From positions 713,467 through 777,466 of the forward strand of contig NW_003314303.1 of assembly GCF_000143415.4 (NCBI RefSeq): a stretch of 64,000 nucleotides of DNA. Reading direction: 5' to 3'. The notes beneath the pieces are model-generated. The model did not search any database. It was not told the DNA's origin and saw only the letters and a program-made list of their open reading frames with translations. Below, one piece after another: positions 14,897 to 43,654 of this stretch. The position numbers and the translations under genes are program-made. Origin of the DNA: Selaginella moellendorffii (taxonomy: Eukaryota; Plantae; Lycopodiophyta). Each line of letters opens with the position of its first letter. Position 1 is the first letter of the stretch.

Positions 14897-17210
14897 GTAC
14901 AGCCTATCACCCACAAACAGGTATTGGTTATTAAGTCAAGTTGGATGGCACTAACACTTCTTGACAAATGGACAAACGGAAAGGGTGAATAGGCAACTGA
15001 AGGATTATTTGCGATGGTATGTCTCCGGAGACCAGACCGATTGGGTAAGTCATTTGGGACTTGCGGAAATGTGTTATAACAACTCACCACATTCGAGTAT
15101 CGGGGTGAGTCTATAGGAAGTCATCAATGGACGAGCTATTGAAGGTCCTGTGGAACTCGGCGTGGCCGAGTATCATGGAGAGTTACCCGTAGTGGAGGCA
15201 TTCAGGGCGGAAAGACTCAACATTTGGAATCTAGTGAGGGATTCCTTGGAACGAACTCAACAAAGGCAAACCAAGTACGCGAACCAGAAGCGCTGGGATA
15301 TAGAGTTCCAAGCTGGGGAGAAGGTGTGGCTGAACACCAAGAACCTCAGGTTGCCAAGTGGGATCAGCTGGAAGTTGACCCAAAAGTAAGATGCATGTAT
15401 TCCTGGAAATGAACTGATCTTGAGTTCTTTAAGTAGATTCGTAGGGCCTTATGAAATTGAGGCACGAATCGGTAAAATGGCTTACCGCCTCTGACTTCCT
15501 TGAGAGATGGGGAAGATGCACCCAGTGTTCTATGTGAACCTACTCAAGCCGTATTTTGAGGATCCACTTTGCAAGGACCAAGTGAGACCTTTACCTGAGG
15601 TTATCCAAGGGGAAGAGGAATACGAAGTGGAGGCCATTCTCAATGCACGCAAGAGCAAGCGACAAGGACATGAGGTGAGAGAGTTCCATGTGAAGTGGAA
15701 AGGATTTCCACACTACGAAGCAACATGGGAACCGAAGGAAAACCTAGCAAACGTGCGAGATCTAGTGGAGGAATTTCTGCAAGGCAGAACTCTATGTACT
15801 TATGCAAAGTTTAATTAAAGTATCAATTTGTGAAGTTGAGCAATGGCATATGTTGGGACCCGAAGGTGTGCCGAAGGTAAGCTAATTAGCATGGGTTAGC
15901 TAGGTCAACCAGGCGTAGGGAACTACGCCTGACTCTCTGCGGGGATATTGAATCCGTAGATGTATTTTACAGGTTGGGTTCGAGTCCCAACCCCCTAGTA
16001 AAGCAAGGCTGGGTTCAAGTCCCGACCCCATACTAGGGCGTGGTGAGGTGAGGGGTATAGGGACACCTATACTCTATTGTCATGGGCTTTTGGCTGGGGA
16101 GGCTAACTTAGGCACACTGCTAAGTGGGGGGATGCCCCCGGAGACATGGTCAACAAGTCATAGGATAAAATGAGACATTTGATGTGGGCATTGAACTTCT
16201 TCTATGGGTGGTGGAGTTGTAAGGAACCAACTTCCTGAGGTGTCATAGGCTAAAGGATCCCCAAAAGCATGACCAAAATGACAAAGAGTTCATTGGATGG
16301 GACTGAGTCTGAGATCGAGTCCAAGACCGACTCTGAGACCGAGTTCGAGATAAAGTCTGGGATCGAGCCCGAGGCCGAATTGGAGACCGAGTTCAAAACC
16401 GAGTTCGAGACCAAGCTTGAGACAGAGTCCGAGATCCAAATCGGGCCCAAGACCGAGTCCGAGGTCAAGTCCAAAGTCGAGTCCAAGATCGGGTCCGAGA
16501 TCGAGTCTGAGACCGAGTCCAAAGTCAGGTCCGAGATCGAGTCCGAGACCGAGTCCGAGTACTAATACAGGTCAAGGGGTGAAAGACCAACATGTGCGTC
16601 TCCCTGGGGGGGGGGGGGCTGCAGGGGGTTCCAAAAGTATAGTAGTGAGGTCTAGGGAACCAGTCTTGAAGGAACTCTCCAATGGTGCTTCTAAACTGAC
16701 TTGAGGTTGAAACTGGGGCTGAAGGGCCTTGGGTGGGAGTGAGCATGGACTTGGGTGGGAGTGAGCATGGACTCGGGTGGTGCCGGAGGGGCCACCCAAG
16801 GAAGTGTTCAAAAGCAGCTCTCACTCCCGAAAGGGAAACCGATTGCAGTGCTCCCGGCTCATGTGGAGTGGTGCCCCACTTGAGTACTTGGTGGCTCATT
16901 GGTCCTCGCCCTTCCTAGGGGCTTGGACCTTCCCTTCGGGATGGAAGTGGGGGGGTAGAGGTACCCATACTGGGCCGTTAGGCCATGGTGTTTTGCCCCG
17001 GTGGGGGATTGGGAGAGATTTGGTAATCTCGGGGTGGATGGCTAACGCTCCGTGGCTCGTGCAGTGAGTAGCTGAAACCAAGTAGGACCAAGTAGGAGCT
17101 GGTACAATAGGCAGGAACCTTGGCGAGGGAAATTAGCAAAAGCCAAGGTAGTGTTGGTTGGATAGACGAAGTAAGTTGGCAAATTGGAAAGGAAAAATTT
17201 GTGGCTTACA
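14897..17210 (+). mobile_element. Ty3/gypsy chromovirus element A, 3' half: integrase C-terminus, chromodomain, PPT, 3' LTR (16218-17210)
   Basis: STAYHPQT..GQTERVN, KFVGPY, YEVEAIL...VKWKGF..YEATWEP; purine-rich tract before TGTAAGG; LTR ends CTTACA followed by TATGG. Confidence 0.9.
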
Positions 17211-20200
17211 TATGGCCATGGAGAAAAGATGTGCAAATGGAAACACCAACGTTGCGACAAACGGTCACGAAAGAAAGAAAGCAATACGGCTTTCTCACAT
17301 GACAATAGGGTCATGGAAACAAGAGAACGAGAATAGAACAAACGGCTCAAATCATATAGCAATATAGCTATAGAACTCAATTCTCCCCTTCCTCAAGAAT
17401 GTCATCCAAGTTATAACCAAAACTCAGAAACACTCTCTTCACGTCATCCTTAGTTTCCCATGTAGCTTCGTCCATGGAATAACCATTCCATTGAACTAAC
17501 AACTCCCTAGTTGTCTTCCAGCGTGTTTTCACCAATCTTTGAGCAAGAATATTGGCCGGACCAGCCTTCTCTGCATCAATCTCTGGAACCTGGATGATGG
17601 ACTGATCCACAATATCACGAAAGTGCAAACACGCTTTAATCTTGCTCACATGGAACGTTGGATGAATCTTCGAACCAATTGGCAAGTCCAAAGTGTATGC
17701 AAGATCCCCCACACGCTGTAAAATTGTCCAAGGCCCACAATAACGTGGAGACAATTTAGCACAGCCACCTCCTTTCAGAGACCATTGTGCATCCAACAGC
17801 TTAAGGAAAACCTTGTCATCAACTTTGTACTCTTGATGACGATGATGCTTATCAGCCAATTTTTTGTCTCATTCTTGAGCTTGCCTTATGTTCAATTTTG
17901 CCAACTCAAGCTTGTCTTGCATATCCTCCAAGAAATCACAAGCATGAGGAACCCGAACCAAAACCACATTCAAACTCACAGGAGACCTAGACTCATAGCT
18001 ATACATTGCCATAAAGGGAGACATGCTAATAGCCGATTGATGAGTGCAATTGTGAGCAAACTGAAGCAAAGGCAAGTACTTCTCCCATACTCCCTGTCGA
18101 GTCAAGTTTCCCACAAAAGACAATAGCATATCTTCTAATAGCTGATTCATGCGCTCTGTTTGCCCATCAGATTGTGGATGCTCACCACTACTCATGCTCA
18201 GCTTAGTCTCTAGTTTCTCAAAGACTGTTTGCCAAAACTTGGATGTGAACTTAGGATCCCGATCACTCACAATGTCACCCAGCAAACCATAAAGACTGAA
18301 TAACCGGTCTACAAACAACTGAGCAAGTTCAGAAGCTTTTATCGTTGTCTTCATAGGGAAGAAGTGAGCCATCTTCATCAAACGATCCACAACAACCCAA
18401 ATAGCATCATTTCCTCGAAAGGTTTTGGGCAAACCAGTGATAAAGTCTATCGAGATGCTATCCCACTTATTCTCGGGTACACGTAAAGGATGATAGAGAC
18501 CAGCAAGCTTCTGATGATCAATTTTGACTACGTGGCAAGTTAAACAACCATGTACGTACTTCTCAACATCTGACTTCATCCCAGGCCAAAAGAAATGCCT
18601 CTTCACCAACATATACGTTCGCAATACCCCCGGATGCCCAGCACTTGGCACATCATGACACTCAACCAAAATCCGTTTGATGAATTTGTCAACACGAGGA
18701 ACCACTACACATCCCTTCTTCACCAGGATTCCATCTCGTATCTCGAATGACGCAAACTTGTCACCCTTTAAATCTGTAGAGGCATCCCTCAACAAAACCT
18801 TCGCGCGAATATCAGTGATAAAGGAGTCAAAGTCAGCAAACTCCTTAAGCTCATCCAAGAGATTGCCAGATAGCTTCACAAACAAGATAGAATTTACCAT
18901 CCTAGATAATGCATCGGCCACCTTATTGTCACCTCCATGCTTGTACTGGATCTCAACAGACATTTCCTGCAAGAACTCTTGCCAACGAGCAAGGTGGCCT
19001 CAAAGATCCTTTTGTCGACTGAAATATTGGAGAGACTGATGGTCTGAATCCACATGGAAGTCCAATCCATATAGATAATGTTGCCATGCCTTCACAACAG
19101 CAATCACAGCATACAACTCTTTGTCTCGAGTAGGCCAATTCCGCTGTGTGGCATCAAACTTATAGCTCATGTATGCAAGAGGATGCCCAACTTGAAGCAA
19201 TACTTCTCCAATAGCAATGTCACTTGCATCTGTCTCGACCACAAGAGGCTTTTCAAAATCAAAAATCTTCAACACTGGAGTAGAGATACAACACTACTTC
19301 AAATGTTGAAATGCCACTTCACACTTCTCATCCCAACCATGAATAGTAGCATGTTTCGACGTATTCTGGAGAAGATTAGTTAAAGGGGCTGACATCCCGG
19401 AAAAGTCCTTCACAAATCGTCGAAAAACTCCAACCATACCAAAGAAACTATGGAGATCATGCACTATCGAAGGTATAGGCCAATCAACCACGGCCTGAAT
19501 CTTTGCAGGATCAGCTCTCACTCCATGTACCGAAATCAAATGCCTGAGATATCCAATCTCATCTAAAAATAACTCGCACTTGGATAACTTCGAGTAGAGC
19601 TTGTTGTCCTTCAAAAGTTGTAAAACACTTCGCACATGCATCTCATGTTCCTCCACGGAAGAGCTGAATACTAGGATATCATCAAAATAATCAATTGCAA
19701 ACTTTCCCAAATAAGGTTGTAGAACTTGATTTATCAATCTTTGAAAAGTTGTAGGAGCATTTGTCAAACCAAACGGCATCACTAAAAACTCGTAGTAACC
19801 TGTCCTTGTCCGAAATGTAGTTTTTGGAACATCCTCTGGCTTGACACAAATCTGATGATATCCTTGCCTCAAATCAATCTTCAAAAAATATTGAGCAAAT
19901 CACCACGAAGACAATCAAGCAAATCATCGATACGAGGGATCAGGAACATATTCTTCACTGTCCTATCATTTAATCCTTTGTAATTCACGCAAAGACGCTA
20001 TGTACCATCTTTCTTTTTGACCATCACCACTGGAGCAGCCCAAGGAGACTTGCTGATCCATAACCACCCTTTCCAAAGGTATTCAGCAAGTTGCCTATTA
20101 ATCTCCTCATCTTTAGCGGGACTAGTACGAGTTGGTTGTCGCTGAAAAGGAGTAGCTCCAGGAACCAAGTCAATCTCATGCTGAATTCCACGTTTGGGAG

Positions 20201-20345
20201 GCAAATCATCAGGTAACTCATCTGGAAATATGTCATGGAACTCCTCCTAAATGGAATCCACTCGAGCCTCATGCCCACGAACATACTCCAAATCAGACAT
20301 GATCATATTAGAAAGAAACGGGTACACCACAAAAGACCTAGCTAT

Positions 20346-22247
20346 TGTGAGACACAAAATCCCTAGGCCCCAAAGTGGAGCCGCAAGGGTGCCATGTGGT
20401 GGTGGCCGAAGCGAAAACCAAACGAGCGTAACACGTTTGGACTAAAAGCTCTAATTTGAAAGGTTGAGAGCGGGAGTGGAAATCCCAACAAAGTGCTCGA
20501 GGAACGAGCACGAAGCGAGCAATAAGCGAGGCTCCAAAAAGGGACCCAAAAGGACCAACACATGACACGTGGAAGAGTCTGAGATGGACCTGAGTTGGAG
20601 TCCGAAGTGGAGTCCGCGAAGGACCCCGAGATGGAGTCCGAAGTGGAGTCCGAGAAGGACCCCAAGATGGAGTCTGAGGTGGACCCTAGATGGAGTCCGA
20701 GATGGATCCAAGATTGAGTCCGAGACGGACTCGAGATGGAGTCCGAGATGGACCCGAGATAGAGTCCGAGATGGAGTCCAAGGTGGAGTTTGAGGTGGAC
20801 CCAAGATGGACCTGAAATGGAGTCCGAGATGGAGTCCGAGATGGACACGAGATGGAGTCTGAGATAGACCCGAGATGGAGTCCGAGATGGACCCGAGATG
20901 GAGTCCGAGATGGACCCGAGATGGAGTCCGAGATGGACCCAAGATGGACACGAGATGGAGTCCAAGATGGAGTCCGAGATGGACCCGAGATGGAGTCCAA
21001 GATGGAGTCCGAGATGGACCCGAGATGGAGTCCGAAGTTGAGACCGAGATTGAGACCTAGACCGGGACCGAGACCGGGACCGAGATCGGGACCGAGACTG
21101 AGACCGAGGCCGAGGCCGAGACCGAGCCCGAGGCCGAGGCCGAGACCGAGCCCGAGTCCGAGTCCGAGTCCGAGTCCGAGTCCGAGTCCGAGTCCGAGTC
21201 TGAGTCCGAGTCCGAGTCCGAGTTCGAGTCCAAGTCCAAGTTCGAATGTGAGAGGGTGAAAGCCCAAAGCATTTGTCCCCCAGACCCTAGGGGGTTTGGT
21301 GAGCTCCAAAAGTATAGTGAGGGGGAGGACTGCAATGGAGCCAGTTTGGCCAGGAAAGGCTAGTTTGGCCCAGGAAGGCCAGACCCAGTGTTGGGTGATG
21401 AGCTGCCCACTGGGAAGTCCAAGACTAGAGTGAACACAAGCCGACAAGCGGGGTAGCTTGGTAAAGTGTTCAAGAGCCGGCTCTAGTTCCCCCAGGAGAT
21501 CGACTGGCCGATGCTCCCAATCCAAGTGTGGGTGGCACTACCTACTTGGATACCTAGTGTGGCTCAACAAAACCTCACTCTAAGCCCATGGCTAGAGCAC
21601 CCAAAGGCAGAAGGCGAGGAGAGTACCCATGAGGCCCGCGTAGGGCCACGGTGTTCCGAAATGTTGTCCCAAAGTCCCAGACTGTGGAAAGGAAAAGGAG
21701 TAGCCCTCTGGTGTGGTGACAAAGGACACGGTCACCTAATGAGGAAGTCCCAGAGGACAGTTGGACTTAGAGGTCGAGTCTGTGGGCCTTGATCTAGTGG
21801 CAGTGTTGGTGAACACGGCCATTGATAGAGAGGGACTTGGTGGGGACCGAAAAAGAGAAATTGGGGAAGGTTATTCCCCAAGTCTGCGAGCATCCTAAGG
21901 ATGCTAAAGAGTGGATCTGGGATGATCACTCATGAATGGATGGCCTAGTCTATGAGAGACAGGATTGCAATGTAGGTGGTGTTGGACCACTGATGTGACC
22001 AAGGTGAATAGGTATGGCCTTAACGTAACGGGCTGATATGTCGGTGGTACCTTAGGGTGTCGATCATGGGATCGAACACGGGGAGCACTTGGACCAAGTG
22101 CTAAGTTGAGTGGCATGGATGCCATTCTCGGGGCTAGCAAGCCCCAAGTCCTGAGTTGGACTTATGGAGGTTGTGAATGAGACTCCTCCAAGTGGTCAGA
22201 GGTGTGGTTAAGTGACTAAAGTAGAATGGAAAAATTAGTCACTTACA
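20346..22247. mobile_element. 1.9-kb solo LTR inserted in element B pol
   Basis: TGTGAG...CTTACA termini, TSD GCTAT/GTTAT; removing it restores the B frame (HEIARSFVVYPF). Confidence 0.8.
20575..21240. repeat. Hexamer-based tandem array (GAGTCC/GAGATG/GACCC variants) inside solo LTR
   Basis: Long run of gagtccgagatg/ggacccgagatg units ending in pure (gagtcc)n; related arrays at 16300-16560 and 38150-38400 in LTRs of element A. Confidence 0.9.
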
Positions 22248-23399
22248 GTTATCTCATGCAAGCATGTCACCAACTCCAAAGCGTTAATCAATGGAGTATC
22301 ACTGTTGTTTGTCCCAACAATCTCTTTTATAGTGCCACCAACTTCAATATGCAGAACATTACGCTCCCAATCGATCCCTGGCTTCCTGTCATAAAACCAT
22401 TCCTTCCCAAGAATAACGTCTGTGCGACCAAGATCCATAACCTGGAATGAAGGATGGTCAAGAATCCCCTGAAACGTCAAAGGAACACTCGGAGCCTATT
22501 CACCATAAACACGAGTGTTATGTCCATCTGCCATAACCACCTCATAGATTACTGAACTTTTTTCCACAAGCAAACCAAGTTTCTTCACCACCTTGGAGCT
22601 TAAAAAGTTGTGTGTAGCACTTGGATCGAAAAGAATACTAACAGCATTACCCTGAATGTCCCCTTTGGCCTTCACAAGTTGATTGCGCATAGAACTATTA
22701 ATCTCTATAGAAGCTCTATTTCGTTAAAGTGGGATTTATTCAGTAAAATGGGACTAGGTACAAATTTTCAAGTATTTGAAAATGACGTGAAATTATATGT
22801 TTTTTGTCCAGGGGCTAGACATATCTGGGGCATGGTGACTAGCGCGGTGACTTTGTGTCCAGACTGAGTCCATCTGGTTGTATAAAAAATCTCATTGTCA
22901 AGGTGAACAAGCCGAATCTGAAGCTAAAGAAGAGCGATGGCATGCGCGCACACACTATTTGTTTGTTCATTGAGCGTGTGGTGAGCTTTCCAAGATGAAC
23001 GTCATTCCTATTAGCCAGACATATAACTTAATGGTGAGAACATTTAGATATTATTCAATGTTATCTTTTTCTAACGAATCTAATTGTGAAGGTGTAGCAA
23101 GAGGCATTGCTAGTCTGGAGAAGTCATTTAACTCATTTGACCCTTAGTGTATTTTCATGAAACTAAATAACATTCATATTATTAAGGAATTTCTCTAGTA
23201 CCTTTTTTTTACGACATAGAGGCTTGCATTTCTTTCAAAGGTGATTTAGTAAAAGGCCTGAGGGCACATGCCATTCTATTTCTCAGACCGGTATTAAGAT
23301 ATACTAGTGCAAAGGGCCACATGCCATCACGCCTCCTCTGATTCAGATTCGGATTGTTCACCTTGAAATAAAATACATTAGAAACTTAGTAAAGGAATA

Positions 23400-26300
23400 T
23401 TAATGAATCTCACCTTGAACCCGGGTTATGAATGCTCTTGCTGCATCTCTTGCATGGTCTGGCAAGGTGATGGTGGCACTCTGCTTCCGCATCCAACCAT
23501 GCACAACATTATCCACCGATATGCTCATGCTGGGATCCCTTGGATTCAGCACCCATCTCTTTTCTAGGCAATCCTTCGTATATCCGGAACTTGGCTTGAA
23601 CCACTCCACAGTTACATTGAAGGAGTTAGTTTCCGCGTCCTCCTCTGCATCAGTGATGCAGCGCCCCACCCATATCATTTGTTTTTTATTACTGGGTCTG
23701 ACAAGCACGACCATTCCTTTGCAGACCTGTACTGGATTGAATGCTGAATCCGGCTTCTTGTTCCTCGGCCCACAATAGTGATCCTCAACATCGTTATCTG
23801 TCATTGCATTTCCAGAGGACATTGTTCCGCTACTATCTGGTGCTCTGGGTTCTGGCCAAAAGGACTCTTCCAATTCTTCATATACAACCGGCCCATTTTG
23901 GATAGCAGATATAATCTTCTCCCAGTATTCGAGCAAAGGCTTGCACCTCTTAAAATAGGATTCTCCACCAAACACCAACCCCCTCTTCCAGAAGGCAATA
24001 TGCTATCTAATCCCGGCCACTATACTTTCCTGGTCTTTGAGTCCATCCGGGTGCATCGGCCGTGGGGAACCCTGAGGAATCATAGGTTCCCCAATTATGG
24101 GATCTCTCTTGAAGAGTTCAATGCCATCCACTGGCAGCCACACTGTGTCCCATTCTCTCATCTTGTACCTCATCACTGGAGCACCGTCACGCATGCTGAA
24201 ATGAAACTGAAGAGGCTTGGAGTGGCCAATCAGCGTTTCGGATCCGTCCCTGATGTAGCCTCTTACAAACCCCTTAAAGTCTGGAACCTCTGTCACAAGT
24301 GCAGCTTCAACAGTGCCTTTGATGCAATTTTGGAATTCATCGTAGAGTTGTGGGAGGGTGAGGACATTGGATCGCCGGAGGGACTCTGCCAGGTGACTGA
24401 ACATGGCATCGACGTCTTCATGAGTGTGCCCAACCATGAGAAAGCCAAGTGTAACCGTTTCAAATATGCCTTTGGCAACAAGCATCGCCAAGTACGCGAA
24501 GACGTACATGTTTTTGTTCTCACTGCCAGCATTGTCTGTTTGGAGCAGAAGATGGGGTGGAAGGCCACATCGGCCGCAAGAACTTCCTTGAGATTCTGCT
24601 TCGTTTGGATGAGGCTGTGCATTCACCGGGTGACCAGCCTCGTCGTAATGGCATGAGGCCTCACGTGATAACCCTACAATCTGACGGCCAACATATTCAC
24701 TAGGATGGCATGGGGCCCCACGCGATACTGCAAGCCTTTGCTCCTCCTCCAGCTGAACCCTGTATGGGGTTCGATCGACAAGGGCCTTATACAAGGGTTG
24801 GCCGTTCAGCTCAGTCTGCGCACTTTGCAGAGACCTTAAGTGTTTTGCTAAGGACGCAATCATCATGTTTGCACCCCCGCCACCCCATAGAGGTACAAAG
24901 AAGTTCCCATAGTTCTGGGCACCATGCCCATGAGCGATTATGCCAAACAGAGACACAGGCAGCTGCATGGATGAAGAGATTGCCTTGGGGGCAGGATTGA
25001 GTCGAGGTAAGCACGTCTTTTTCTGATCCATTTTGTCGTGGATGATGCAGAGGTAAGAGTCAGGTCTCTCCATGGAGAGAATCCTGTTATGATAATATGC
25101 AGTCCTGCAGCTTCTCTGCTCGATGTTGTGGTCGAGCCGCCTTCTAACCAACGTCTCTCGCTCTTGAGCGCTGCAAGAATTCTTCGACAAAGCCATTTTG
25201 ATAGCAGTGCACTCGTCACACTTTGAAAAGCTGGAGTACTTTCCTATACTCACATCCCTGAACCTGTTGCTCCACAATCTACTAAATCTAGACTGGCTCA
25301 GCTTCCTGTAGCCATTACTCTGGAGTTCCCGATTCACATCTTCCAATATGGCCCCCTTGGTATACATGGAAGGGAGAACTCGTTGGGTGTCTCGTGTTCC
25401 ATCTTCCAAGAGGCGGGTTTTATGTGGTTGCTGCTCGCTACATGTCTCGACAAACCTCTTGAAGATTGCCTCTCCATATACAACATGACCCCTGGTTTTG
25501 TGCGTACCGTCGTTCCCATGGACTGCCTGTTGAACCCTTTGTTCCTCGAACTCAGTTTTGATTCTGTAGAATGTGGTTCGAGGGACTCCATAAATGATTC
25601 TCCATGCCTTCATGCAGACCAAACCCCTCTGGAAGACCATGCCCCCCACCTGATGTTCTGAAGCATCAACAGATGACCGTAATGCCTCATACACAAAATT
25701 GCAAGCTGCCTTCCAGGACAATGTCTTGTATCTTGCTCTCTCCTCTTCAATAGCATCCCAATCAGCATGTTGACAGCACCTCCTCTTGCAACAAGCAACT
25801 GTCGAGACCATTCGAACCTCCATCGCCATTTTCTGCCTTTTCAGTTCGTTGCTCAGATCCCTTTGGCTGCGCTGTAGGAAGGTGTACTTTCTTTTCCCAT
25901 GAAGAGATGTTCTGTCATCAGTTGTAGTGGTGTTTGATTGTGAATCCTTCACATTCTCAAACACTAAATGCCTCAATTTCCACCGCACAATGCTTCCAAT
26001 AGTCAGACTGTTTTCTTCTGTGTCAACAACCTCTAAAATTGCAACTCCAATATCATCCCAGCCCAATTCTTGATTAGCAACCGCATCTCTTGGATCGACA
26101 ACTGTGGCTAAGCCCTCAGCTACCACCTCCCCCTCGGGGTTGTTTAGAAACACCTTTGCCTGAATCCATGTAGCACGGTTCTTAAGATCCACGGAGGGAA
26201 CATGCGTCGCACTTGTGCTGTCCCCAACATCTGCTTTCTTTTGAAGATTTTTCAAGGCAACAACAACATTTACCCCGACGACCATCTCTCCTCGTTCAAT

Positions 26301-26468
26301 AGCGACCACATTCCCATCGAAGACAGTCTCTACTGATACAGCAGCATTGCCTTCCCCAAGCCTTTGACAGTGTATAACAAAGTTCCGATCCATAGACACA
26401 AGGGTCCCTTTTGCAACTCTCTTCCCACCATTCAAAATGTAAACCTTTTCCCCAACCCTGAAGGCCAT
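23400..26468 (-). CDS. DDE transposase (Sola1-like), ~1020 codons with one nonsense codon at 24003-24005
   Basis: FSKCDEC, IIHDKMD, LQTDNAGSENKN, GFLMVGHTHEDVDAMFS motifs; ORF 23400-23978 continues in the same frame after TAG; extra small terminal exons likely. Confidence 0.8.
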
Positions 26469-26835
26469 TCTGAAAGTGCAGAAAAGAAGTTAAGACCATA
26501 CAAAAAATGATTGGAGAATGGCCTAAATCATAACATACCAAACAACCTCAATAGCATGAGGCCACATGCCATTATTCAAACATGCTATTGACACCCACAT
26601 GAAATTTCGCATTCACAAAATTGGCATGAGGCCTCATGCCATCTTGATATACACACAGCTGCAGGCAAGTAAAAACATACATGACAATACGCTAGCCATG
26701 AAATTGCAAGGGCCCAAGATGGCATGTGGCCTCATGCCATTTCTAAATGTGGTCCTAAACCATTCCATGGTGAACATACCAGGAAGCACAAGTGCCGAAT
26801 ATCAAGAGGAAGCGGTAGCCACACCAAAGACAGTG

Positions 26836-33100: not shown

Positions 33101-35585
33101 GGCAAGCACCAGCCAAGCTCAAACTGACAGTGGTCATAAAAAGCGAAAGCACGTTGGACAGTCGTCGAGATCAGAGGCGTTTGATTCGAAAAGGAAGAAG
33201 GGCAACGAAAAGATGATAGGTAATGCCTCGCGGTTATGGCGTGTGTGCTCATGCCATTCATTGCAGATCAAGGGCTGAGTGAAAGCAGGCAGTCACCACC
33301 TCATGACTCAGATTCCTATGGCGGACTCCCCTTCCCCAATCTCAATGGAGAGGTACAATGGATGAGGGAAGCTTTTCAAGGCAGGGCCACGTTTTTCTCA
33401 TCTCGTCGTCTTCGAAGGGTGCAAGAACGTGCAGAAACCATGTTAAGACAGTCGGGTGAGGATACGGTCCTAGGTCACGCACTAAAACAAGCTATGGATG
33501 TCTTGTATTTTGAGATGGAGACTCGGCCAGATGATTTTCCCAAGATGGTCCTGGAAGAACAAGCCATCCAGCCTGAGCAGCCTATGGAAGAAATGCAGGA
33601 GGGGGATGAGGAGCCAGAGAAAGATAATGAGCAAGAAGAGCAGAAGGACGAAGAGGAGGACAAAGAAGAGGAGGACAAAGAAGAGGAGGACGAAGAGGAC
33701 TTGGATGGTCCTCACAATGGTCACGATCACAATAACGACGACGACGATGATGACGACGATGGCCAGCCTGAGGTGGCCAAAGAGCGGCGGAGGAAGGTCA
33801 TACAAGACAAACCATCAGGTAAATAATAATACATCCATTCCTAACCTTTTACCATTTCTAACATTGTCCATGTAGGTCGCAGAGCAAATGGTAAGTAGAG
33901 ATTATTCAGTTGAATTTACAAACTCTAGCCTTTAGTGTCGAGGAAGGATAGTGCCAAGCAAGGGTCGAAACGTATGTCCAATCCTTCAGAATCAGCAGTG
34001 CGCTCAAGTGATATCGGTCCTAGTTCCTCAATAGCAGTTGATGGTAAATACAGTATAGTCGATTCAATGTGCTAATGAGTTTGTTTTTAGTAGCACGGGA
34101 GGATACCATCTCAATCGAAGGGAGATATTTGGACATGCATATGGATCCGCCAGTGGACTCTACTTGGCTGCAAGAGTCATCAGAGCTGGTGGAGGCTACT
34201 ATCCATATCAACGCCAAGCAAACTGACCACGCTCCACTTGATGCTGCCCATACCACTGAGTCAATCTTGTCCACGTATCCAACTGACGGTGACCAGGCGC
34301 CATTGGACCCACATGAGGCCGCCCCAGCCGCCGAGCCGGTCGTATCCTCATTTCCAACGGACTCAACGTGTGCCCAATCGTCTGACTACGCGCCGTTGGA
34401 ACCTCCCTACACCGCCCCTGCTGCTTGTTCGGTCATGTCCACTTTGCCAACGGAGGCACCAGCTGAAATGGCGTGTGATCACACGCCATCGGAACCACCC
34501 CATGCCACTGTTGAGCCAGTTGTACCAGAGTCTACAGCTGAAATGGCATGTGCCCACACGCCATCGGATGCGATTGACCCCACATTGCAGAGGAGAGTAT
34601 TTCCGCCCTTCACGTTTCCTCGACCAAAACCCTCTCAACGACCATCGGGAGCAACATTCGCTAATATTGTAGATGGTAAAATTGACTTGTACCATTTTTT
34701 ATGCTGACGCATTTCATTTCAGAGTCACGGCGAAGGTACTGTATCGTTTTTGATCTGAACGGTGTCCTTTTCTCCCATGAGCGTGGCTCGTCCTCGAATG
34801 TCATTGCACCCTCCAAAGCCTGCGGTCGCAAGTTGGTCAAAAGAGACAGATTCACATTAATCACACGGGAGAAACTGCGGGATCTAATAATGACCATGCG
34901 ACACTTAAAACAGAGGGCCGGGTTCAATTTGCAATTGGGAGTTTGGACATCCATGATGCGCCACAATGCATTAACGTTGCTACAGATGATGCACGATCAG
35001 ACGCGAGTAATATTACCATTTGACTTTCTCCTAACGCAGGAGGATTGCTTGACTATGGTCCATGTGAGGGGTAGCAAGCCCATCTTCGTCAAGCCAGAGG
35101 CTGTAGTGATGAACCGGACTGCTAGCTCAAGTGAAATCCTCATCATCGATGACTCGCCGATTAAAACTGCAGCGAACACGCACACATATGCAGTGCACCC
35201 CATCTCTTGCAGTATGGAAACTAGGGAGAAGAAACCGTATGTTCTGGGGGACCTTGCAAAACGGCTTGGAGCGATGGTGATAGAGAACCGGCCAGTCCAG
35301 GAGGTGGCTGCAGAAATCAACCAAATGGCAGATGGAACGGTATATCAGAAGCCATTTGATCGGACAGACACCAGTCATCATTTATGGCATGTATATTGTC
35401 TAGCCAAGCACTATCCGCATCTCCATAATCTGCTCAACCGGATGGGTTCTTCGACCACTGAACATGAGCGTGGACGTATTAGAGAAGAGATGGCATTACT
35501 ATTGGGTTTAAATCCTGATAGTGTGGAGAGTGATGAAATTCCAAGATTATTGTATAGGCGTTGGAGGCAAAAAATAACAGTCTGA
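30184..35585 (+). CDS. Large multi-exon transposon accessory gene: ParB-like region, degenerate N6/N4-MTase-like region, K-rich/acidic/P-rich linkers, C-terminal HAD (FCP1/NIF-like) domain; one nonsense codon at 31999-32001
   Basis: ORFs 30184-32001 and 32053-32778 share a frame; GT-AG introns (31384-31437, 32899-32954, 33027-33075, 33220-33266 and others) chain the exons; motifs YTIDVSRIDI..YNHRL..FYAVSGQHSSLAM, CVVEYNCGGLFFRAALLKGVPCVAV, IVFDLNGVL/VWTS/FVKP/ILIIDDSPIK; 5' start uncertain. Confidence 0.65.
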
Positions 35586-36940
35586 GATGGCATGTATTTA
35601 TTTAAAAATGTAACTTATTATGGCATGGTGTTCCATGCAATTGTATTAATATTAAAAGACAATTCTTTGAGAGGATTTGCATTATACTAGAAGTGTTACA
35701 GCATGTTATTGGAAGTCTACGAAGTTGTTTTATTAATAATGGGAAAGTAAAGATTGAATGGGGACTTGGGCTCCACCTAGACTCGGAGCAACTGAGCCAA
35801 TATTAAAAGGATGGAAAGAAATTGGACGACGATGACAAGGAGAAGAGAGAGGTGAAGCAGTGGCAGGGGGAGGAGAAGTGATTGAGTAGACATTTCCTTG
35901 TTTAAAATAAAATGGCATGTGCCTCAATGCAGTTGAATTTTGTTATATTTATATACTATATAAAGGTTTGGAAACCTTATTTTACAAGTGGGATAATGAC
36001 AATTCCCACTTTAACGAAATAGAGCTTATAGAGTTGATACGAACTCAAGACTTAGATTCTTGAATTTTTGCCACAGGGTGTGGAAGAGCCATCACAGCAG
36101 ATGCCTGAACTATATCCACAATGGATTCCACAACATGCACCTTAGCATTCTTTGATCCCTTCATAAGAGGACAATCCTTGCCATGATGTTCAGCCTTGTG
36201 ACAACAAAAAAAATTGCCCTCCACCTTGTCTTTCTCTCGTTGGTCTAACCGATGTCTTTTTGCCTTATTACCATCTCCACTCTTCATGCTTTATTACCAT
36301 CTCCACTCTTCAAGCTATGACGAAACAACAGCCGTTTCTTCCCTGAAGATGAAGTATTGGTGGGTTGGTCATCACATGGACTACCCGGGAGACCATCCTT
36401 TTGACCAGAGTTGACCAAGTTGACCAACGGTTTAGGCGAAAAGATTTGAGCCTTAGTGATAGCACCAGTCAATGTTGCTGGAAAATCCTTCTTGACCTTT
36501 TGCTGCACATCCACTAAGCTCAATCCTTTAATGAAACAGTGCACCTTTAACAGCTCATTATAGGTGCCCGTGAGACTAAGGCAAAGATCACGGAACTTGC
36601 GGGCATACCCATCTAAAGACAAAGTCCCTTGCCGGATCTCTAACAGCTGGTTCACGAGATTAACCTCTTCAAACTTCTTGACAAACGAAGTGTGGAAAAC
36701 CTTTGTCAAATCTGTCTAAGAAGTTGGCTTCGGATTATCTTTAATGTAGTTCTTCCATCATGAAGAAGCATGGCCCATAAGCTTCGTTACAAAGAAATCT
36801 ATCTTCACCTTATCCTCACAAAGATTGTGAGACCAACAACTTTCCCACAATTCCAACCAAGAATCAACTTCTTGACTATCACAAACATCTGATGAAGATT
36901 TCCATTCCATGATACCATAATCCTTGGCATGCTTGACATA

Positions 36941-37867
36941 GAGTAAAGATTGCATTGCTACTCAAAGGCATCGAGCACGATGATCTCCCCTAGGACCTGA
37001 AGAACAAGGGCCAGCTCCTGCTCGAATCCAATCCAATCCACTGTAAGCAACCAAAGGGAACGACTTGAGAGACGATCCATGGGGTTCAAATATAGAGGGA
37101 AAGGGCCCATGAATAAGAGTGCACCCCCTTTTCCAATCGGTTAAGGGTCTTGGGATATTTGGGGTTAAGCGTCCTTGGGTTTGAATAGTACTGGGCTAGA
37201 TGACCTCCCAGGAAGTCCAAACTCAGAAGTTTACATTTGGTATCGGAGTGGTTTTGGGTCCAACTCTGTTGGTTAGTTAGGGGAATCACACCACATGTTG
37301 ATTGACATCTGATTGACATCTAGCTGGTCCAGTTTGCTCCCACTGGGCTTGACCCGAGGGGTAGGGTGTCAAGAGAGCGGGGCTCTTGGGAGAGCTGCGG
37401 CTCTCAGCTTCCGTTCACGAGGGCATGAATTTGTAGGGAAGTGTGGTGGATTGTAAGCAACCAAAGGCAACGACTTAAGAGACGATCCATGGGGTTCAAA
37501 TATAGAGGGAAAGGGCCCATGAATAAGAGTGCACCCCCTTTTCCAATCGGTTAAGGGTCTTGGGATATTTGGGGTTAAGCGTTCTTGGGTTTGAATAGTA
37601 CTGGGCTGGGTGACCTCCCAGGAAGTCCAAACTCAGGAGTTTACATCCACAAGAAGGTCTTGGTTCTCATCCACAATGGGAAGCCCATTGTGGAATCAAT
37701 CATTATTGTTTAGTACATCGACAAGGTCTAGTGCGGAGAATCTCCATTGCTGCCTTCAGACGCTCTCCTCCGTGCAGACGCTCTCCTCCGTGCAGAGTGT
37801 CACTTCTGGACGGATTTCATTGACAAGAAGGTATGCGTCTCTAGAGCCATACATCCCTGATGTGATC
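36941..37867 (+). pseudogene. Type-c tau GST fragment in inverted orientation, interrupted by TRIM and abutting element B LTR
   Basis: Reverse-complement match to 54023-54305 (RVKIALLLKGIEHDDLP..ESNPIH/KK..). Confidence 0.85.
37042..37645 (+). mobile_element. Cassandra-type TRIM: LTRs 37042-37235 and 37452-37645 containing 5S rRNA-derived segment
   Basis: TG..CA 194-bp LTRs, PBS TGGTATCGGAG, purine tract before LTR2, TSD TCCAC; LTR segment gttaagcgttcttggg..aatagtactgggctgggtgacctcccaggaagtcc matches 5S box A-C region. Confidence 0.9.
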
Positions 37868-38065
37868 TGAAATGAACAAGAGAGTGAACCCTAGGCCAAC
37901 CTCCCAACCCTTAAGGCGTTATGGCCTTAAATCCCACATGCCATGGAATATTCTTAGAATATTCCTGTGGTTTGTGTCATTCTCCCCTCCCTCATGACCC
38001 AGCCACATATGGTAGCCTCGAGAAGCTAAACGAGCCTCACATAAAGGGAGTCCAAGCCAATATGG
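37868..38065 (-). mobile_element. Other part of element B 3' LTR (host site of element A)
   Basis: Starts TG exactly where GST homology ends; ends in TATGG, the TSD partner of 17211-17215. Confidence 0.7.
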
Positions 38066-41000
38066 TGTAAGGAACCAACTTCCCGAGGTGTCGTAGGCAA
38101 AAGGATCCCCGAAAGCATGACCAAAATGACAAAGAGTTCATCAAATGGGACTGAGTCTGAGATCGAGTCCAGGACCGACTTTGAGATGTAGTTCGAGATA
38201 GAGTTCGGGATCGAGCCCGAGGCCGAATCGGAGACCAAGTTCAAAACCGAGTTTGAGACCGAGTTTGAGACAGAGTCCGAGATCCACATCGGGTCCAAGA
38301 CCGAGTCCGAGGTCGAGTCCAAAGTCGAGTCCGAGATTAGGTCTGAGATCGAGTCCAAGATCGAGTCCGAGACCAAGTCCGAATTCGGGTCCGAAATCGA
38401 GNNNNNNNNNNNNNNNNNNNNNNNNNNNNNNNNNNNNNNNNNNNNNNNNNNNNNNNNNNNNNNNNNNNNNNNNNNNNNNNNNNNNNNNNNNNNNNNNNNN
38501 NTCAAGGGGGGAAAGCCCAAAGCGGGCATCTCCCAGGGGGGGGGGGGGGGGGGGGGGATATAGGGGGTTCCAAAAGTATAGTAGGGATAGTGAGGTCTAG
38601 GAACCAGTCTTGAAGGAACTCTCCAGTGGTGCTTCCAAACTGACTTGAGGTTGAGACTGGGGCCGAAGGGCCTTGGGTGGGAGTGAGTATGGACTCGGGT
38701 GGTGCCAGAAGGGCCACCCAAGGAAGTGCTCAAGAGCAGCTCCTACTCCCGAAAGGGAAACCGACTGCAATGCTCCCGACTCATGTGGAGTGGTGCCCCA
38801 CTTGAGTACTTGGTGGCTCATTGGTCCTCGCCCTTCCTAGGGGCTTGGACTTTCCCTTCGGGATGGAAGTGGGGGGGTAGAGGTACCCATACCAGGCCGT
38901 TAGGCCACGGTGTTTCGCCCCGGCGTCCCGAAGCAAGTGTTGCACCTAAAGCTTGGGATTTAGAGGGTCCTATGATCAAGTCATGTTGTACCAAGGGATG
39001 TTAGGAACCTGGAGGCTTGGTGTGCTTGGCTGCTTGTGCCTGTGGGGAGTGTAGCCAAACCTTAAGTCCAATCTAACCCAGGGAGGGGGATTGGGAGAGA
39101 TTTGGTAATCCGTGGATGGATGACTAACGCTCTGTGGCTCGTGTAGTGAGTAGCTGAAACCAAGTAGGAGCTGGTACAATAGGCGGGAACCTTGGTGAGG
39201 GAACTTAGCAAAAGCTAAGGCAGTGTTGGTTGGATAAACGAGGTAAGTTGGGAAATTGGAAAGGAAAAATTTGTGGCTTACAATTTGGTATTGGAGTGTT
39301 TTCCTCAGTTCTAGCGAAGGATAGAGGCAGATTGCTGGGAGATGGCAAAAGCGGGGCGTAAACGAACCTCCGCCAGAGCTAGAGCCTCCAGTCGAACAAG
39401 AGGCTATGGATGAGGAATCCTTGCATGAGGAGGACTTCAGTGAGGAAACTTCCAAACAGGAGTCCGGTGGTGAGCTTCGGTCGTCCAAGGCTTGATTGGA
39501 CGTTCTAAAAGGACAATTGGCACAAACCAATGCCCTGCTGGAGACTCTTGTACGCAAGCTAAAGCGTGACAAGAAGCAGAAGAAAAAGCGAAAGACTACG
39601 GATGCTGGTAGCACAAAAGGTGCGGACCCTTCGGTAGGGACTAAGGCAGAACCAAACAAGGTCGAATAGACTGAAGTGGAATCAATCCCTCAAGCAGTTC
39701 CCAAGTACAAACCAAAGCCCCCACCGGTCTTCAAGGGAGCGAATGACTATAAGGTGGTGGAGGATTGGTTTTACGATATGGAGGACTACTTCCGAGCATT
39801 GCGGTTACCGAGTTCGGAGAAGGTCCTATGTGCAAAACCATACTTGGCAGATAATGCCAAGTCTTGGTGGAGAACAACAGAGGCCAACGAAGGATCGGTG
39901 GCCACTTGGGAAATGATGAAGGTGAGGATTCGCGCGACGTATGTTCCTCCGAATGCTACTCATCACCTAAGGGATGAGCTGAGTAGGCTGAAGCAGACCG
40001 GAACCATTCAAGAGTATATAAATGGGTTTATGGCAAAGAGGATACTGGTCACGGATATGGGTGATATGGATGTGTTCCATGCCTTCATATCAAGCTTGCA
40101 AACCTCGGCTCGCGGCGAGGTGATGCGTTGGAACTTGACCAATTAGAAGGAAGCATTGGATGCAGCTATCAAGGTGCATTTCAACGATAACCTGCAAAAG
40201 GGGAAGACGACAGGGTCGGGTCCACGTTTAGCAAAGGGGCCAAACCAAGGGGAACATATAGCAAAAAGAAATTCAAGAAGAGTTTCTTTAAAAATGAGTC
40301 CTCGGGGGTTCCAGAAAGGCAAATCCGGTGGTCAGCGAGCAAGTACGTGGGGGAGTTAGGCAAAGAGAAACAAACCCATGGATAAAAAGGTCAAGTTAGT
40401 TAGCAGTGTGGGAAACAAGTATGTTACAACTATGGCGAAGCGGGACACTTTTCGAGGGAATGTCCCTACCTAAAGAAGGCCAAAGCCAATATGGCCATTA
40501 AGTCGGGTGAAATCCAAAATGAGATATATGATCCAATCCCTAGCTCAAAGTTACTCATTACATGAGAAACTTTGGTAGAGAGTTGTTCGCGACATCTACT
40601 AGCCCTTCGAGGGAAGCTTGGAGGTAGCTTTGTTAAGATCCTTATTGACACGGGTGTTTCGAATAATTTTGTGGCTACAGACATAATCCGGCAAGCTGGA
40701 CTAACAATGTAGCGGCTGGGCGAACCAAGGACTATAGAGTTTATTCAAGGTAGCCAAAGCACCGATGAAGTGCTTTGACAAGCGAGAGTCAAAGTAGGGA
40801 CATGGAAAGTAGACATGGATTTCACCGTGTTGGACATAGCGGGATTTGACGTAATCTTTGGGATGGATTGATTCAATCGGTTCATGGTAGCCCTGCATGG
40901 ACAAGGTAGGAACCTTGTGGTACTAGCGAATGCCCAAGGAAGAAGATCTAGAGTGGAGGCCCAGGATCTAAAGGTAGGGCAATGCAAAGCCAAAGACTCC

Positions 41001-43372
41001 TGCCTAAATCTAGTGTCCACGAGAGGACAACTCATTAAAGGAACCAAGGCAGCATTTTTGTGCTTATGTAAGCAACCAAAGGGAACGACTCGAGAGACGA
41101 TCCGTTGGGGTTTAAATATAGAGGGAAAGGGCCCATGAACAAGAGTGCACCCCCTTTTCCAATCGGTTAAGGGTCTTGGGATATTTGGGGTTAAGCGTCT
41201 TTGGGTTTGAATAGTATTGGGCTGGGTGACCTCCTGGGAAGTTCAAATTCAAGAGCTTACAACTTACTCTCGGTGAAGAGTGACAAAAAGGACGGGAAGG
41301 GAAGAAGTACCTTTAGTGATCCGGCGGGTGTTGGACCAATTCCAGGATACCATGCAAGAGGAGTTACCGACGGGGTTGCCCCCCGCACGACCGATGGAAC
41401 ATAAGATTGAGCTGGTTGAGGGTGCTAAGGTGGTGGTTTGTCCCCCCTATTGTTTGAATGAAAAGGAACTCGAGGAGTTCAAGCGCCAACTAAAGGAGTT
41501 GGTGGACAAAGGGTATGTTAGGTTGAGCAAGTCGCCATATGGGGTACCGGTGTTATTTGTGAAAAAGAAAGATGGATCTATGCATATGTGCATAGACTAC
41601 TGGTTGCTTAACAAGTATACAAAGAAGAACAAATACCCTTTGCCAAGGATTGAGGACATATTCGATAGGTTGGGAAAGGCAAAATACTTCTCGAGGATTG
41701 ACCTAAGGTCAGGATACTACCAAATCAGGGTAGCAGAGGAAGATGTTGAGAAGACAGCCTGTCAAACAAGGTATGGAAGCTTTGAGTTTCTGGTGATGCC
41801 CTTCGAGCTATGCAATGCGCCGGCAACATTTTCGGTGTTGATGAACCATATCTTTATACCCTATCTGGATCACTTTGTGGTCGTCTATATTGACGACATC
41901 CTGATCTATAGCAAAATGCTAGAGGAGCATGCTGAACACTTGACGAAGGTGTTTGAGAAACTAAGGGAACATTAGCTGTATGCTAAAGAGAGCAAATGTG
42001 ACTTTGCTCAACAAAAGGTAAAGTTTCTCGGGCATGTGGTGGGCAAGGACGGGCTCAAGGTGGACCCCGAGAAGGTCCAAGCGATTCAGGATTGGGAGCG
42101 ACTATCGAATGTACACCAATTAAGGGCATTCTTGGGGCTATGCAACTACTACCGAAGGTTTATCAAACACTATTTGAGAGTAGCCCTACCTTTAACGGAC
42201 CAAACGGGAAAAGGGAAGATGGTATAGACAGCAGAATGCGAGGCGGCATTTGTCCACCTCAAAGGGAAGTTGAGGAAGGCTCTCGTGTTAGAATTACCAG
42301 ACTTTGGTAAGGACTTTGAGGTAGAAATGGATGCTTCAGACTTTGCGTTGGACACAGTTTGAAGTAAGACAACCATCCAATAGCGTTCTTCTTGAAGAAG
42401 TTGGACAAGGCTCAACGAAAGTGGCCTGCCCACGAGAAGGAATTATTTACGGTAGTCAAGGCACTCAAGGAGTGGCGACACTACCTTGGGAGACACTTTA
42501 AGGTTTACACGGACAATGTGGCAACGAAACACTTCTTGTACAGCCTAACCTGAGAGGGAAATAGGGTCGGTGGGCCAATGCTTTGGCTGAGTTTGATTGC
42601 GAGATTCTGTACAAGCCTGAGAGGAGCAACATCATGGCGGATGCACTAAGTCAGAAAGCGAGCTTGAAGTTGGCAATATCCAGCATGACAGAAACCTTTT
42701 GGGATGATGTGCGGGTAGCATATGAGAACGATGGTCTAGCACAAGAAGTGTTGCTGAGGAATTTGGAGGCGCGGGAAGCTCACCAAAGAGGTGAGCTGCC
42801 AATGGAAGAGAAAACGGGTTATGCAGAACGCAACGGACTCATCTATTACAAGCAAACAAGGGTGTATATTCTAGAAGGGGAACTAAAGAAGGTAACATTA
42901 GAAGAATGTTATGACGGACCTCTTGTGGGACACGGCGGAATGCCCAAAATAATAGGCTTACTCAAGAGGAAGTACCATTAACCAAATATAGCTAAGAACG
43001 TTCAAGACTATGTAAAGATATGTCCAACATGTTAACAGGTCAAAACCGTGACTAAAGTTAATAGGGGCTTGTTACAAAACATCTCAATTCCAGATCGTCT
43101 GTAGAAATGTCTTATGATAGACTTCATCACGGGACTCCCCCCAAATGAGGGGTTTGATGCAATATTCGTGGTGGTGGGCTGATTTTTTAAGATAGCACAT
43201 TTCATACCCACCACAACGGAAGTTGATGCGGAAAATGTGGCAAAGCTATTCTTCGAACAAGTGGTTCGAGTGCGGGGAAGGCCAGAGGAGATCATCTCAA
43301 ATAGAGATAAGATCTTCATCAGTAGGTTCTAGAGAACTCTCCTGAAATAGTATCGCACCAAGTTGAAATTCA
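38066..43372 (+). mobile_element. Element A 5' part: 5' LTR (38066-39282), PBS, gag, protease, RT, RNaseH, integrase N-part (decayed)
   Basis: LTR TGTAAGG..CTTACA matches 16218-17210; PBS-like TGGTATTGGAG; [40 protein letters not shown]; ends ..TKLKF. Confidence 0.9.
41067..41261 (+). mobile_element. Solo LTR of the Cassandra-type TRIM inside element A pol
   Basis: Same 195-bp TG..CA sequence as 37042-37235; TSD GCTTA/ACTTA. Confidence 0.88.
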
Positions 43373-43525: not shown

Positions 43526-43654
43526 ATTGTCAATGCAGTTTCTCTAGAAGAAGAAGAAAGAACGAACCTGAAGCGCTATATTTTGGTGGAGTAGGCCAGC
43601 TGACACACCGAAGCCCGTTCCTCGCCCTTCCACCTTGGCTTTTTCCGGAAAGAA

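Follow-up and report, generated by a model that had tools for sequence, protein, structure and literature searches.

How does a segment of 28.5 kb come to lie inside a UGT gene with its own order rotated and both its ends placed within another gene? The question is raised by a 64,000-nucleotide stretch of the Selaginella moellendorffii genome (scaffold GL377607.1:713467-777466, hereafter the window), which lies within a tandem array of UGT and GST genes longer than 180 kb. The UGT copy of array unit 2, a sugar-transferase gene, is split here by an insert that spans positions 14897-43372. Sequence comparison within the array confirms this permuted insertion as real, and it is probably best read as a circle of chromosomal DNA that re-integrated through one precise crossover.

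The interrupted UGT gene

The gene and its intact counterpart in unit 1 are arranged as follows.

2310-2325, minus strand: uninterrupted site in the paralogous unit 1, reading AAATCCCA^TACCTT
13581-14896, minus strand: UGT of unit 2, 3' part of the gene, encoding the C-terminal two thirds, up to the left junction (Pfam UDPGT; 97.4% to unit 1)
14897-43372: insert, 28.5 kb
43373-43660, minus strand: UGT of unit 2, N-terminal part of about 50 codons, which continues the intact sequence without a skipped base (95.5% to unit 1)

The two units align on either side of the insert, with 97.4% identity between 966-2320 (unit 1) and 13545-14900 (unit 2) and 95.5% between 2316-5401 (unit 1) and 43371-46447 (unit 2). 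The part at 13581-14896 is annotated as the partial protein SELMODRAFT_111636, and the N-terminal open reading frame of the unit 1 UGT matches solved plant UGT structures. Exact-protein look-ups of the junction reading frames gave no matches. Six further UGT copies run through the site uninterrupted; the same scaffold carries four of them and a syntenic scaffold two.

The left junction reads CCCA|GTACAGCC and the right junction AAATTCA|TACCTT. As the original prediction had stated, the gene breaks without loss or duplication: against the intact site of unit 1, zero bases are lost and zero are duplicated, and a target-site duplication is absent. The only homology at the crossover is the dinucleotide CA, which is common to both partners.

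Element A is split and rotated

Both ends of the insert fall inside the integrase of a single Ty3/gypsy element, element A.

14897-16217, plus strand: element A, 3' part, with the integrase from a split Ser codon (S-TAYHPQT), chromodomain and polypurine tract (Chromo domain; colinear with the integrase of element B)
16218-17210, plus strand: element A 3' LTR, TG..CA (self-comparison with 38066-39282; sequence)
17211-17215, unstranded: target-site duplication of A, TATGG, right copy (sequence)
38061-38065, unstranded: target-site duplication of A, TATGG, left copy (sequence)
38066-39282, plus strand: element A 5' LTR, TG..CA, holding the N gap 38402-38501 (comparison with the 3' LTR; sequence)
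39283-43372, plus strand: element A, 5' part, with primer-binding site (PBS), gag, reverse transcriptase, RNase H and integrase up to ...TKLKF plus one base (Pfam; tblastx; sequence)
41068-41262: solo LTR of a TRIM (miniature LTR retrotransposon) within A, the third copy of this LTR (sequence)

Translation of the insert's right end gives ...TKLKF and one further base, while the left end supplies two bases followed by TAYHPQT. When rejoined, the integrase of A is colinear with that of element B (TKLSMSSGEHPQSDGQTE) and has the same spacing, with no base or codon lost or gained. With the B integrase as a ruler, the predicted joining of the two ends into an intact integrase at the shared CA thus holds. 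The LTRs lie in reversed order, the 3' LTR to the left of the 5' LTR, and the TATGG copies face inward, both as predicted; the PBS directly follows position 39282. The rejoined integrase, the reversed LTRs and the inward duplication together constitute a circular permutation of the source order.

Elements A and B are chromoviruses of the Ty3/gypsy type, each with gag, reverse transcriptase, integrase and a C-terminal chromodomain (Pfam; tblastx colinearity). The two LTRs of A are about 88% identical (K2P 0.099), whereas the UGT flanks diverge from unit 1 by 0.022-0.026, about fourfold less. Because its LTR divergence is four times that of the flanks, A was old on arrival and cannot have retrotransposed here.

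Several simple mechanisms are rejected on the boundaries of the insert. Insertions of LTR retrotransposons are recognized by TG..CA termini and a target-site duplication of 4-6 bp. Ordinary retrotransposition of A into the UGT gene fails on these points, as the boundaries lie inside the integrase reading frame, LTR ends and duplication are missing, and the LTRs are of much greater age than the flanks. Helitrons insert between A and T and carry a 5'-TC, a 3'-CTRR and a 3' hairpin. The target A^T fits, but the termini do not (GTACAG... / ...AAATTCA, or TGAATTT... / ...CTGTAC on the other strand). Neither one inversion nor one unequal crossover yields more than one of the two junction types.

Nested elements and the GST fragment

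Between the two halves of A, the insert is composed of the following parts.

17216-17379, minus strand: element B, probable inner part of the 3' LTR, ending in CA (sequence)
17380-17394, minus strand: polypurine tract of B, after the inner LTR part (sequence)
17380-22710, minus strand: element B (Ty3/gypsy) pol, with chromodomain, SH3, integrase, reverse transcriptase and protease (Pfam; tblastx against A; protease reading frame 22499-22723)
about 20343-22251: LTR-like insertion of 1.9 kb with tandem repeats in B pol, with relatives in the same-scaffold stretches L005 and L006
22711-36027, unstranded: Sola1-like DNA transposon nested in B, 13.3 kb, holding the N gap 28665-29437 (inverted repeats; ATAG; DUF7869 and NIF-like reading frames)
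36028-36940, minus strand: element B gag with zinc knuckle and capsid, truncated close to the N-terminus by the closure junction (Pfam Retrotrans_gag / Ty3_capsid; reading frames)
36941-37043, plus strand: GST-c-type fragment (GST'), beginning at about codon 15 of exon 1 and opposite in orientation to the GST genes of the array (GST-c alignment)
37044-37646, plus strand: TRIM in GST exon 1 (sequence; LTR pair)
37647-37867, plus strand: GST', remainder of exon 1 and first bases of a short intron (GST-c alignment; tree)
37868-38060, minus strand: element B, probable outer part of the 3' LTR, its TG starting exactly where GST-c homology ends (sequence; GST-c alignment)

The inverted repeats of the Sola1-like transposon (22705-22737 and 36001-36033) are 91% complementary and are accompanied by a 4-bp duplication, ATAG. 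The real 3' LTR of B probably consists of 37868-38060 and 17216-17379 with A inserted in between; the 5' LTR of B is absent from the insert.

TRIMs have LTRs of about 100-250 bp, a PBS and a polypurine tract, are non-coding and generate a 5-bp duplication. The element at 37044-37646 belongs to this class: its LTRs (37044-37236 and 37452-37646, 193-195 bp) are 96.9% identical (K2P 0.032), a PBS (TGGTATCGGAG) is followed by a 215-bp interior, and TCCAC is duplicated on both sides. The original prediction had placed a "B LTR" at 37042-37646; its 195-bp repeats are the LTRs of this TRIM, which sits within a GST exon.

The GST piece is correspondingly larger than the 101 bp proposed, as the GST-c alignment continues past the TRIM. 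It spans 36941-37867 in total, with about 320 bp of exon 1 and the start of the intron. Over positions 36941-37043, the six GST-c copies that can be aligned are 95-99% identical to the fragment, and the GST-c copies read through the TRIM insertion site uninterrupted. Downstream, where the GST-c copies are shorter, the lower identity stems largely from gap columns. Alignment and tree assign the fragment to the array's own GST-c type, as had been proposed. An origin as templated filler or by recent gene conversion is rejected, since the exon continues across the TRIM and the same pattern is found in all GST-c copies.

The closure junction

At 36940/36941 the minus-strand gag of B abuts GST exon 1 at about codon 15, and GST homology begins exactly at 36941. 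In a linear source, the 5' LTR of B and the rest of the intron would be expected in place of this join. The insert thus contains an internal closure junction that connects the two ends of the source segment, B gag and GST exon 1. The donor order proposed originally (GST fragment, B LTR, A, B LTR, B internal region) stands in its permuted topology and was mis-annotated in its parts: the supposed B LTR repeats are TRIM LTRs, A lies in the true 3' LTR of B, and B lies in the short GST intron.

Proposed formation of the insert

The proposed pathway would start with a chromosomal stretch of about 28.5 kb that runs from codon 15 or so of a GST-c-type gene through the GST intron to the gag of B, which had inserted in the intron. 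Before circularization, B would already have held A in its LTR as well as the 13-kb Sola1-like transposon. The stretch would then have closed into a circle by joining B gag to GST exon 1 at 36940/36941 and inserted in one UGT of the array. Circle and UGT would have recombined once, in the integrase gene of A and at about codon 50 of the UGT, at the shared CA. The exchange would be lossless, with neither partner short of a base, and would leave a rotated donor copy that disables the UGT of unit 2.

Directly seen are the two reciprocal junctions, the inward-facing TATGG copies and the nesting of the elements. A free circle, the route of its closure and the means of the exchange, whether precise end joining or a reciprocal exchange of topoisomerase type, are the presumed parts of the pathway. 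The eccDNA-mediated transposition of the original prediction keeps its permuted topology, its precise reciprocal junctions and its inward duplication, but the same product could arise from a tandem donor or from inversions.

Such routes dispense with a free circle and are considered unlikely. A donor duplicated in tandem (B gag joined to GST exon 1) may have served to repair a break in the UGT by copying from mid-A to the next mid-A, through template switching, either synthesis-dependent or microhomology-mediated; as variants, the segment may have been moved and inverted by two overlapping inversions or by a same-chromosome cut-and-paste event. Tandem duplication makes the closure junction in one step, and an intrachromosomal event would allow a GST-c fragment of the array's type that is inverted relative to the array. 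A replicative interaction with a circularized donor has likewise been invoked for published human cases (PMC7450558). On a linear tandem donor, however, copying must end at the exact base at which it started, which is a coincidence there and expected for a circle. The inversion model demands a fourth junction, with the 5' LTR and gag start of B beside the rest of the GST gene, which is absent from the array sequence fetched around the window (-105 to -84 kb and -30 to +86 kb) and on the second scaffold.

A reversed polarity, with A as the recipient and a ring of array units integrating within its integrase, is highly improbable. The symmetrical junctions would fit it, and tandem arrays shed circles easily. 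Against it, the array extends for tens of kilobases to either side of the insert, its right end lies in unique genes (stretch L002), and the A/B/GST segment closes on itself within the insert.

A circular intermediate is the most economical explanation and the one chosen here. A donor locus, a deletion scar or a circle was not found in the approximately 170 kb of array sequence that were fetched (L002, L005, L006, and L007 on GL377607.1; L003 and L004 on GL377632.1). B, the GST' with its TRIM and the reciprocal junction are absent from these six stretches (L002-L007), and the predicted donor with linear order or reciprocal deletion was thus not encountered in a search limited to this sequence. 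The scaffold interval 629.6k-683.4k is without any called gene.

Read support and assembly

Among the junctions of the insert, read support is found for the left one only. In one public run, X4, a contig of 1113 bases on 13944-15056 bridges the left junction and retains the private alleles of unit 2 at 14834, 14864, and 14866. Its depth is shallow (2.6), and farther from the junction it carries majority-type alleles; X4 and the reference may share one source clone. Sample S1 (three runs) holds only uninterrupted-type sequence at the left junction, and the right junction was not found in any of the listed public sequencing runs. The reads that had been called for across the junctions are therefore at hand on the left side, but no listed run holds the right one.

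These findings bear on a partial assembly artefact, in which the UGT/A junctions are real and the interior is mis-built. A permuted A alone, as an integrated 1-LTR retrotransposon circle, might have received B, Sola, and GST sequence from another copy of A, or the scaffold might have been misjoined over the gap in the A LTR. The assembly is a Sanger draft (PMC5750206), and its read support at this locus is confined to the left junction. The family of A is very abundant, with a read depth about 1000 times that of the UGT, so a collapse in such a draft is possible, and gap 38402-38501 lies within the LTR of this high-copy family.

This artefact is nevertheless quite improbable. An unbroken left contig leads from the UGT across the 3' LTR of A and TATGG into B, the middle contig holds TATGG and the start of the 5' LTR, and the two are linked by the Sola ends, the Sola duplication and the reading frame of B. 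The sides of the first gap (28665-29437) are tied by the Sola inverted repeats, ATAG and the continuity of B from zinc knuckle to protease. The second gap (38402-38501) lies in the tandem-repeat part of the 5' LTR; both its sides are colinear with the 3' LTR and fit a single LTR with about 30 bases missing. Continuity over both gaps is inferred, because neither is read through. A mis-build would require two independent chimeric joins and, in addition, a real tandem duplication elsewhere.

Comparison with known DNA circles

1-LTR and 2-LTR circles are by-products of cDNA that hold the element alone. The proposed Selaginella circle resembles them in being circular DNA that contains a retrotransposon. 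Unlike them, the insert derives from chromosomal DNA, because it carries the target-site duplication of A and 21 kb of host flank.

Plants contain abundant circles of chromosomal DNA, whose return to the germline genome is largely undocumented. In epigenetic mutants of Arabidopsis, chimeric TE-gene eccDNA circles occur (PMC10462705) that likewise combine a partial LTR retrotransposon with flanking host DNA. The chimeric circle described there is about 1.4 kb and its re-insertion is not demonstrated; re-integration of eccDNA is poorly described outside cancer cells (PMC10462705). Against this background, the locus may, as a tentative reading, record how a large non-replicative eccDNA returned naturally and heritably to the genome of a land plant, by one reciprocal, lossless exchange at 2 bp of homology. 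A strand exchange of recombinase or topoisomerase type, and not ordinary error-prone end joining, would then be indicated, and gene-array remodelling by DNA circles would have its first plant example resolved to the base. If confirmed by long reads, the case would mean that 28 kb of pseudogene and transposon debris can move as a ring, that such a ring can inactivate one gene of a detoxification array, and that its exchange can be exact to the base.

Segments of the cattle KIT locus have been described as translocating serially by way of circular intermediates (Durkin et al. 2012, as cited in PMC12235870 and PMC10462705). As far as these citing accounts go, the two systems share a segment inserted elsewhere in rotated order, a closure junction inside it, and a germline, heritable change. 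The cattle segments, according to the same accounts, measure hundreds of kilobases, carry a functional gene, cause a phenotype and have known donor loci, whereas the Selaginella insert is 28.5 kb of pseudogene and transposon debris with base-exact junctions.

In human segmental duplications, a reversal from A-B/C-D to B-A/D-C together with microhomology or short indels marks a circularized donor (Chicote et al. 2020, PMC7450558). The Selaginella insert shows the same reversal of order, with microhomology alone at its breakpoints. The human cases were found by comparing donor and acceptor, whereas here the permutation is read from the split retrotransposon, a built-in ruler whose own LTRs and duplication resolve the permutation, the closure and both junctions to the base without a known donor. 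Transposon halves that flank an insert in the wrong order are a simple pattern by which further events can be searched for.

Insertion site and junctions

The insert at 14897-43372 interrupts the UGT of the second array unit at about codon 50. The neighboring unit 1 carries an uninterrupted paralog, in which window 966-2320 corresponds to 13545-14900 and 2316-5401 to 43371-46447, and the N-terminal ORF of this paralog aligns with residues 7-175 of solved plant UGTs. At the base level, the intact site reads AAATCCCA^TACCTT, the left junction CCCA^GTACAGCC, and the right junction AAATTCA^TACCTT (carets mark the breakpoint). The comparison with unit 1 bears out the original observation that the UGT was broken with no base lost and none duplicated. 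Five further UGT copies are uninterrupted at this site: one each at L005, L007, and the last unit of L002 (loci elsewhere on the scaffold, GL377607.1) and two on GL377632.1. A reverse polarity of the event is considered highly improbable.

Both insert ends fall in a single integrase, that of the Ty3/gypsy element A. At the right end stands ...TKLKF with one further base, and the left end begins with two bases completing a Ser codon, followed by TAYHPQT, a 47-base insertion, and DGQTERVN. The integrase of a second Ty3/gypsy element, B (TKLSMSSGEHPQSDGQTE), has a spacing equal to that of A's rejoined ends, so that no codon of the A integrase is missing or repeated and the ends rejoin to an intact integrase as proposed. 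The 47-base insertion lies directly after HPQT (window 14921-15436) between near-repeats (ACAAACAGG and ACAAACGG) and could be a small duplication as easily as an intron. At the crossover, homology is confined to the CA already recognized as common to both sides; a TAC sits one base out of register. Neither a chimeric read nor an error of a k-mer assembler would be expected to give two exactly reciprocal junctions, and the junctions are therefore taken as biological.

Support from sequencing runs

Four runs of the species were listed in a run search at the left junction; at the right junction there were none. All four (X1-X3 from sample S1, 2024; X4 from another sample, 2020) were aligned to window 13000-18999. 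An X4 contig of 1113 bases on 13944-15056 bridges 14896/14897, 953 of its bases falling in the UGT and 160 in A. Beside the junction it has three unit-2-private alleles; farther away its alleles are of unit 1 type, as would be expected when a multi-copy gene is assembled from a shallow graph. X4 is independent support for the left junction, though its clone may equal that of the reference. X1-X3 show unit-1-type alleles only, at all positions in 13000-14896 that distinguish unit 2, and their contigs run past 14896 into unlike sequence, i.e. they represent uninterrupted copies. The insertion was unseen in the X1-X3 contigs over 13000-18999, which cannot prove absence; the S1 array may be without unit 2 or homogenized.

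Anatomy of the insert

Features of the insert (window positions)
16218-17210 and 38066-39282: LTRs of element A, TG..CA termini; PBS after 39282
17211-17215 and 38061-38065: 5-bp duplication TATGG of element A, inward-facing
37044-37646: miniature LTR element (TRIM) within GST gene exon 1; two 195-bp LTRs, PBS TGGTATCGGAG, duplication TCCAC
41068-41262: TRIM-family solo LTR inside element A, flanks GCTTA/ACTTA
36941 (about codon 15) to 37867, plus strand: GST piece ending a few bases into its short intron; inverted relative to the array GSTs
37868 (TG start, where GST-c homology ends) and, across A, 17379 (CA end): putative B 3′ LTR, beside a polypurine tract and the B chromodomain
Minus strand: element B interior, with chromodomain, integrase, reverse transcriptase, and protease in order
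20343-22251: 1.9-kb LTR-like piece in B between protease and reverse transcriptase; tandem repeats of about 23 bp
22711-36027: 13.3-kb Sola1-like DNA transposon in B; inverted repeats, 4-bp duplication ATAG
36940/36941: closure junction; B ends at 36940 without a 5′ LTR, abutting GST

The reversed order of the A LTRs, with TATGG facing inward, and the closure of B gag onto GST are as first described. The GST fragment, claimed to be of the array's own type, falls inside the GST-c clade of the tree on its own long branch, with 92-94% identity to each of the seven copies available. The 195-bp repeats had been taken for B LTRs and are instead the two LTRs of the TRIM. With such annotation corrections the original observation stands, and its interpretation as a DNA circle is supported in part only. 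We infer that the two pieces flanking A are the B 3′ LTR with A inserted. Beyond the Sola1-like element, B resumes with a zinc knuckle and a capsid domain.

The TRIM family has LTRs of 193-195 bp and a tRNA-Met-type PBS, and comprises one full element and several solo LTRs; other LTR sites lie at L002 18686-18899 and L007 20931-21124 (window orientation). Copies of the 1.9-kb LTR-like piece occur at 80-84% left of the window (L005, L006), some apparently paired, and its repeats are similar to those in the A LTR.

The source assembly is a Sanger-era draft (PMC5750206), and two gaps fall in the insert. Gap 1 (28665-29437) lies within the Sola1-like element, and its contigs probably belong together, since the Sola ends, the duplication, and the flanking B sequence (zinc knuckle, and protease about 80 codons on) agree. 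Gap 2 (38402-38501) lies in the tandem-repeat part of the A 5′ LTR, where the flanking contigs remain colinear with the A 3′ LTR except for about 30 missing bases. Continuity over both gaps is thus probable from structural arguments rather than from reads, and an assembly artefact in the interior appears improbable. Ahead of gap 1, the Sola element contains direct repeats (27274-27540 = 28260-28517, 94%; 27653-27786 = 28531-28664, 99%) that could reflect either local duplication or a stutter of the assembly at the edge of the gap.

The UGT/GST array

The window, GL377607.1:713467-777466 of assembly GCA_000143415.2, sits within a tandem array with a unit length of about 11 kb; S. moellendorffii proteins match its UGT ORF at 97% identity. 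Each unit has, on the minus strand throughout, GST-a, a UGT, a DUF4378 gene, GST-b, and a decayed GST-c. Further loci on the scaffold extend the array at least from 608 kb to 790 kb of the record. The second, syntenic scaffold, GL377632.1, has the PTS_2-RNA gene of the flank as well, and represents either a segmental duplicate or the other haplotype. Identity between the two is 95-98%, below expectation for alleles. The two differ greatly: in GL377607.1 608k-790k, more than 180 kb contain six or more UGT copies, and in GL377632.1 904k-944k about 35 kb contain two; in the right flank, a 1.9-kb stretch is inverted between them.

Compared with unit 1, a later unit carries a 2.7-kb deletion in its UGT/DUF4378 region at window 56000/56005, corresponding to 1390-4058. 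At 12495-13235, a hybrid GST joins GST-c to GST-a; it is without the segment equivalent to 53925-54551 and is what unequal crossover between adjacent GSTs would be expected to produce. A lone 546-bp piece of array UGT on another scaffold (L001 10130-10675, GL377567.1; 98% identity), annotated as a 282-aa glucosyltransferase among unrelated genes, may be transduplicated or captured. RefSeq model XP_002979810.2 (498 aa; L002 10001-30607) covers 20.6 kb of array units and N gaps and looks like a model stitched together from UGT halves of separate units.

Route of insertion

The K2P divergence of the A LTR pair (0.099) exceeds that of the UGT flanks from unit 1 (0.022-0.026), so A was an old element by the time units 1 and 2 diverged; the TRIM LTR pair stands at 0.032. 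A arrived in the unit 2 UGT as DNA, flanks included.

Rotating the source order, GST - B LTR - A - B LTR - B interior, gives the observed one: UGT, A 3′ half, LTR, TATGG, B through B gag, GST, B LTR, TATGG, LTR, A 5′ half, UGT. A ring opened within A would have been joined to the UGT break, and a single exchange of such a ring accounts for both junctions. With moderate confidence, we favor a circular intermediate as the origin of the insert. An identical topology could arise by copying from a linear tandem duplicate, which must stop at the exact starting base, or by two overlapping inversions, which yield the same product but predict a fourth junction that was not found in any array sequence retrieved; these routes are judged unlikely. 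Such exact joins on both sides are unusual for end joining in plants and suggest either a reciprocal exchange of strands or the ligation of clean ends.

The event type is already known, and the insert is a candidate new example of it. Plant work describes eccDNA re-integration as poorly documented (PMC10462705). The signature found here agrees with that of circular-intermediate events already published (PMC7450558; Durkin 2012, as cited in PMC12235870).
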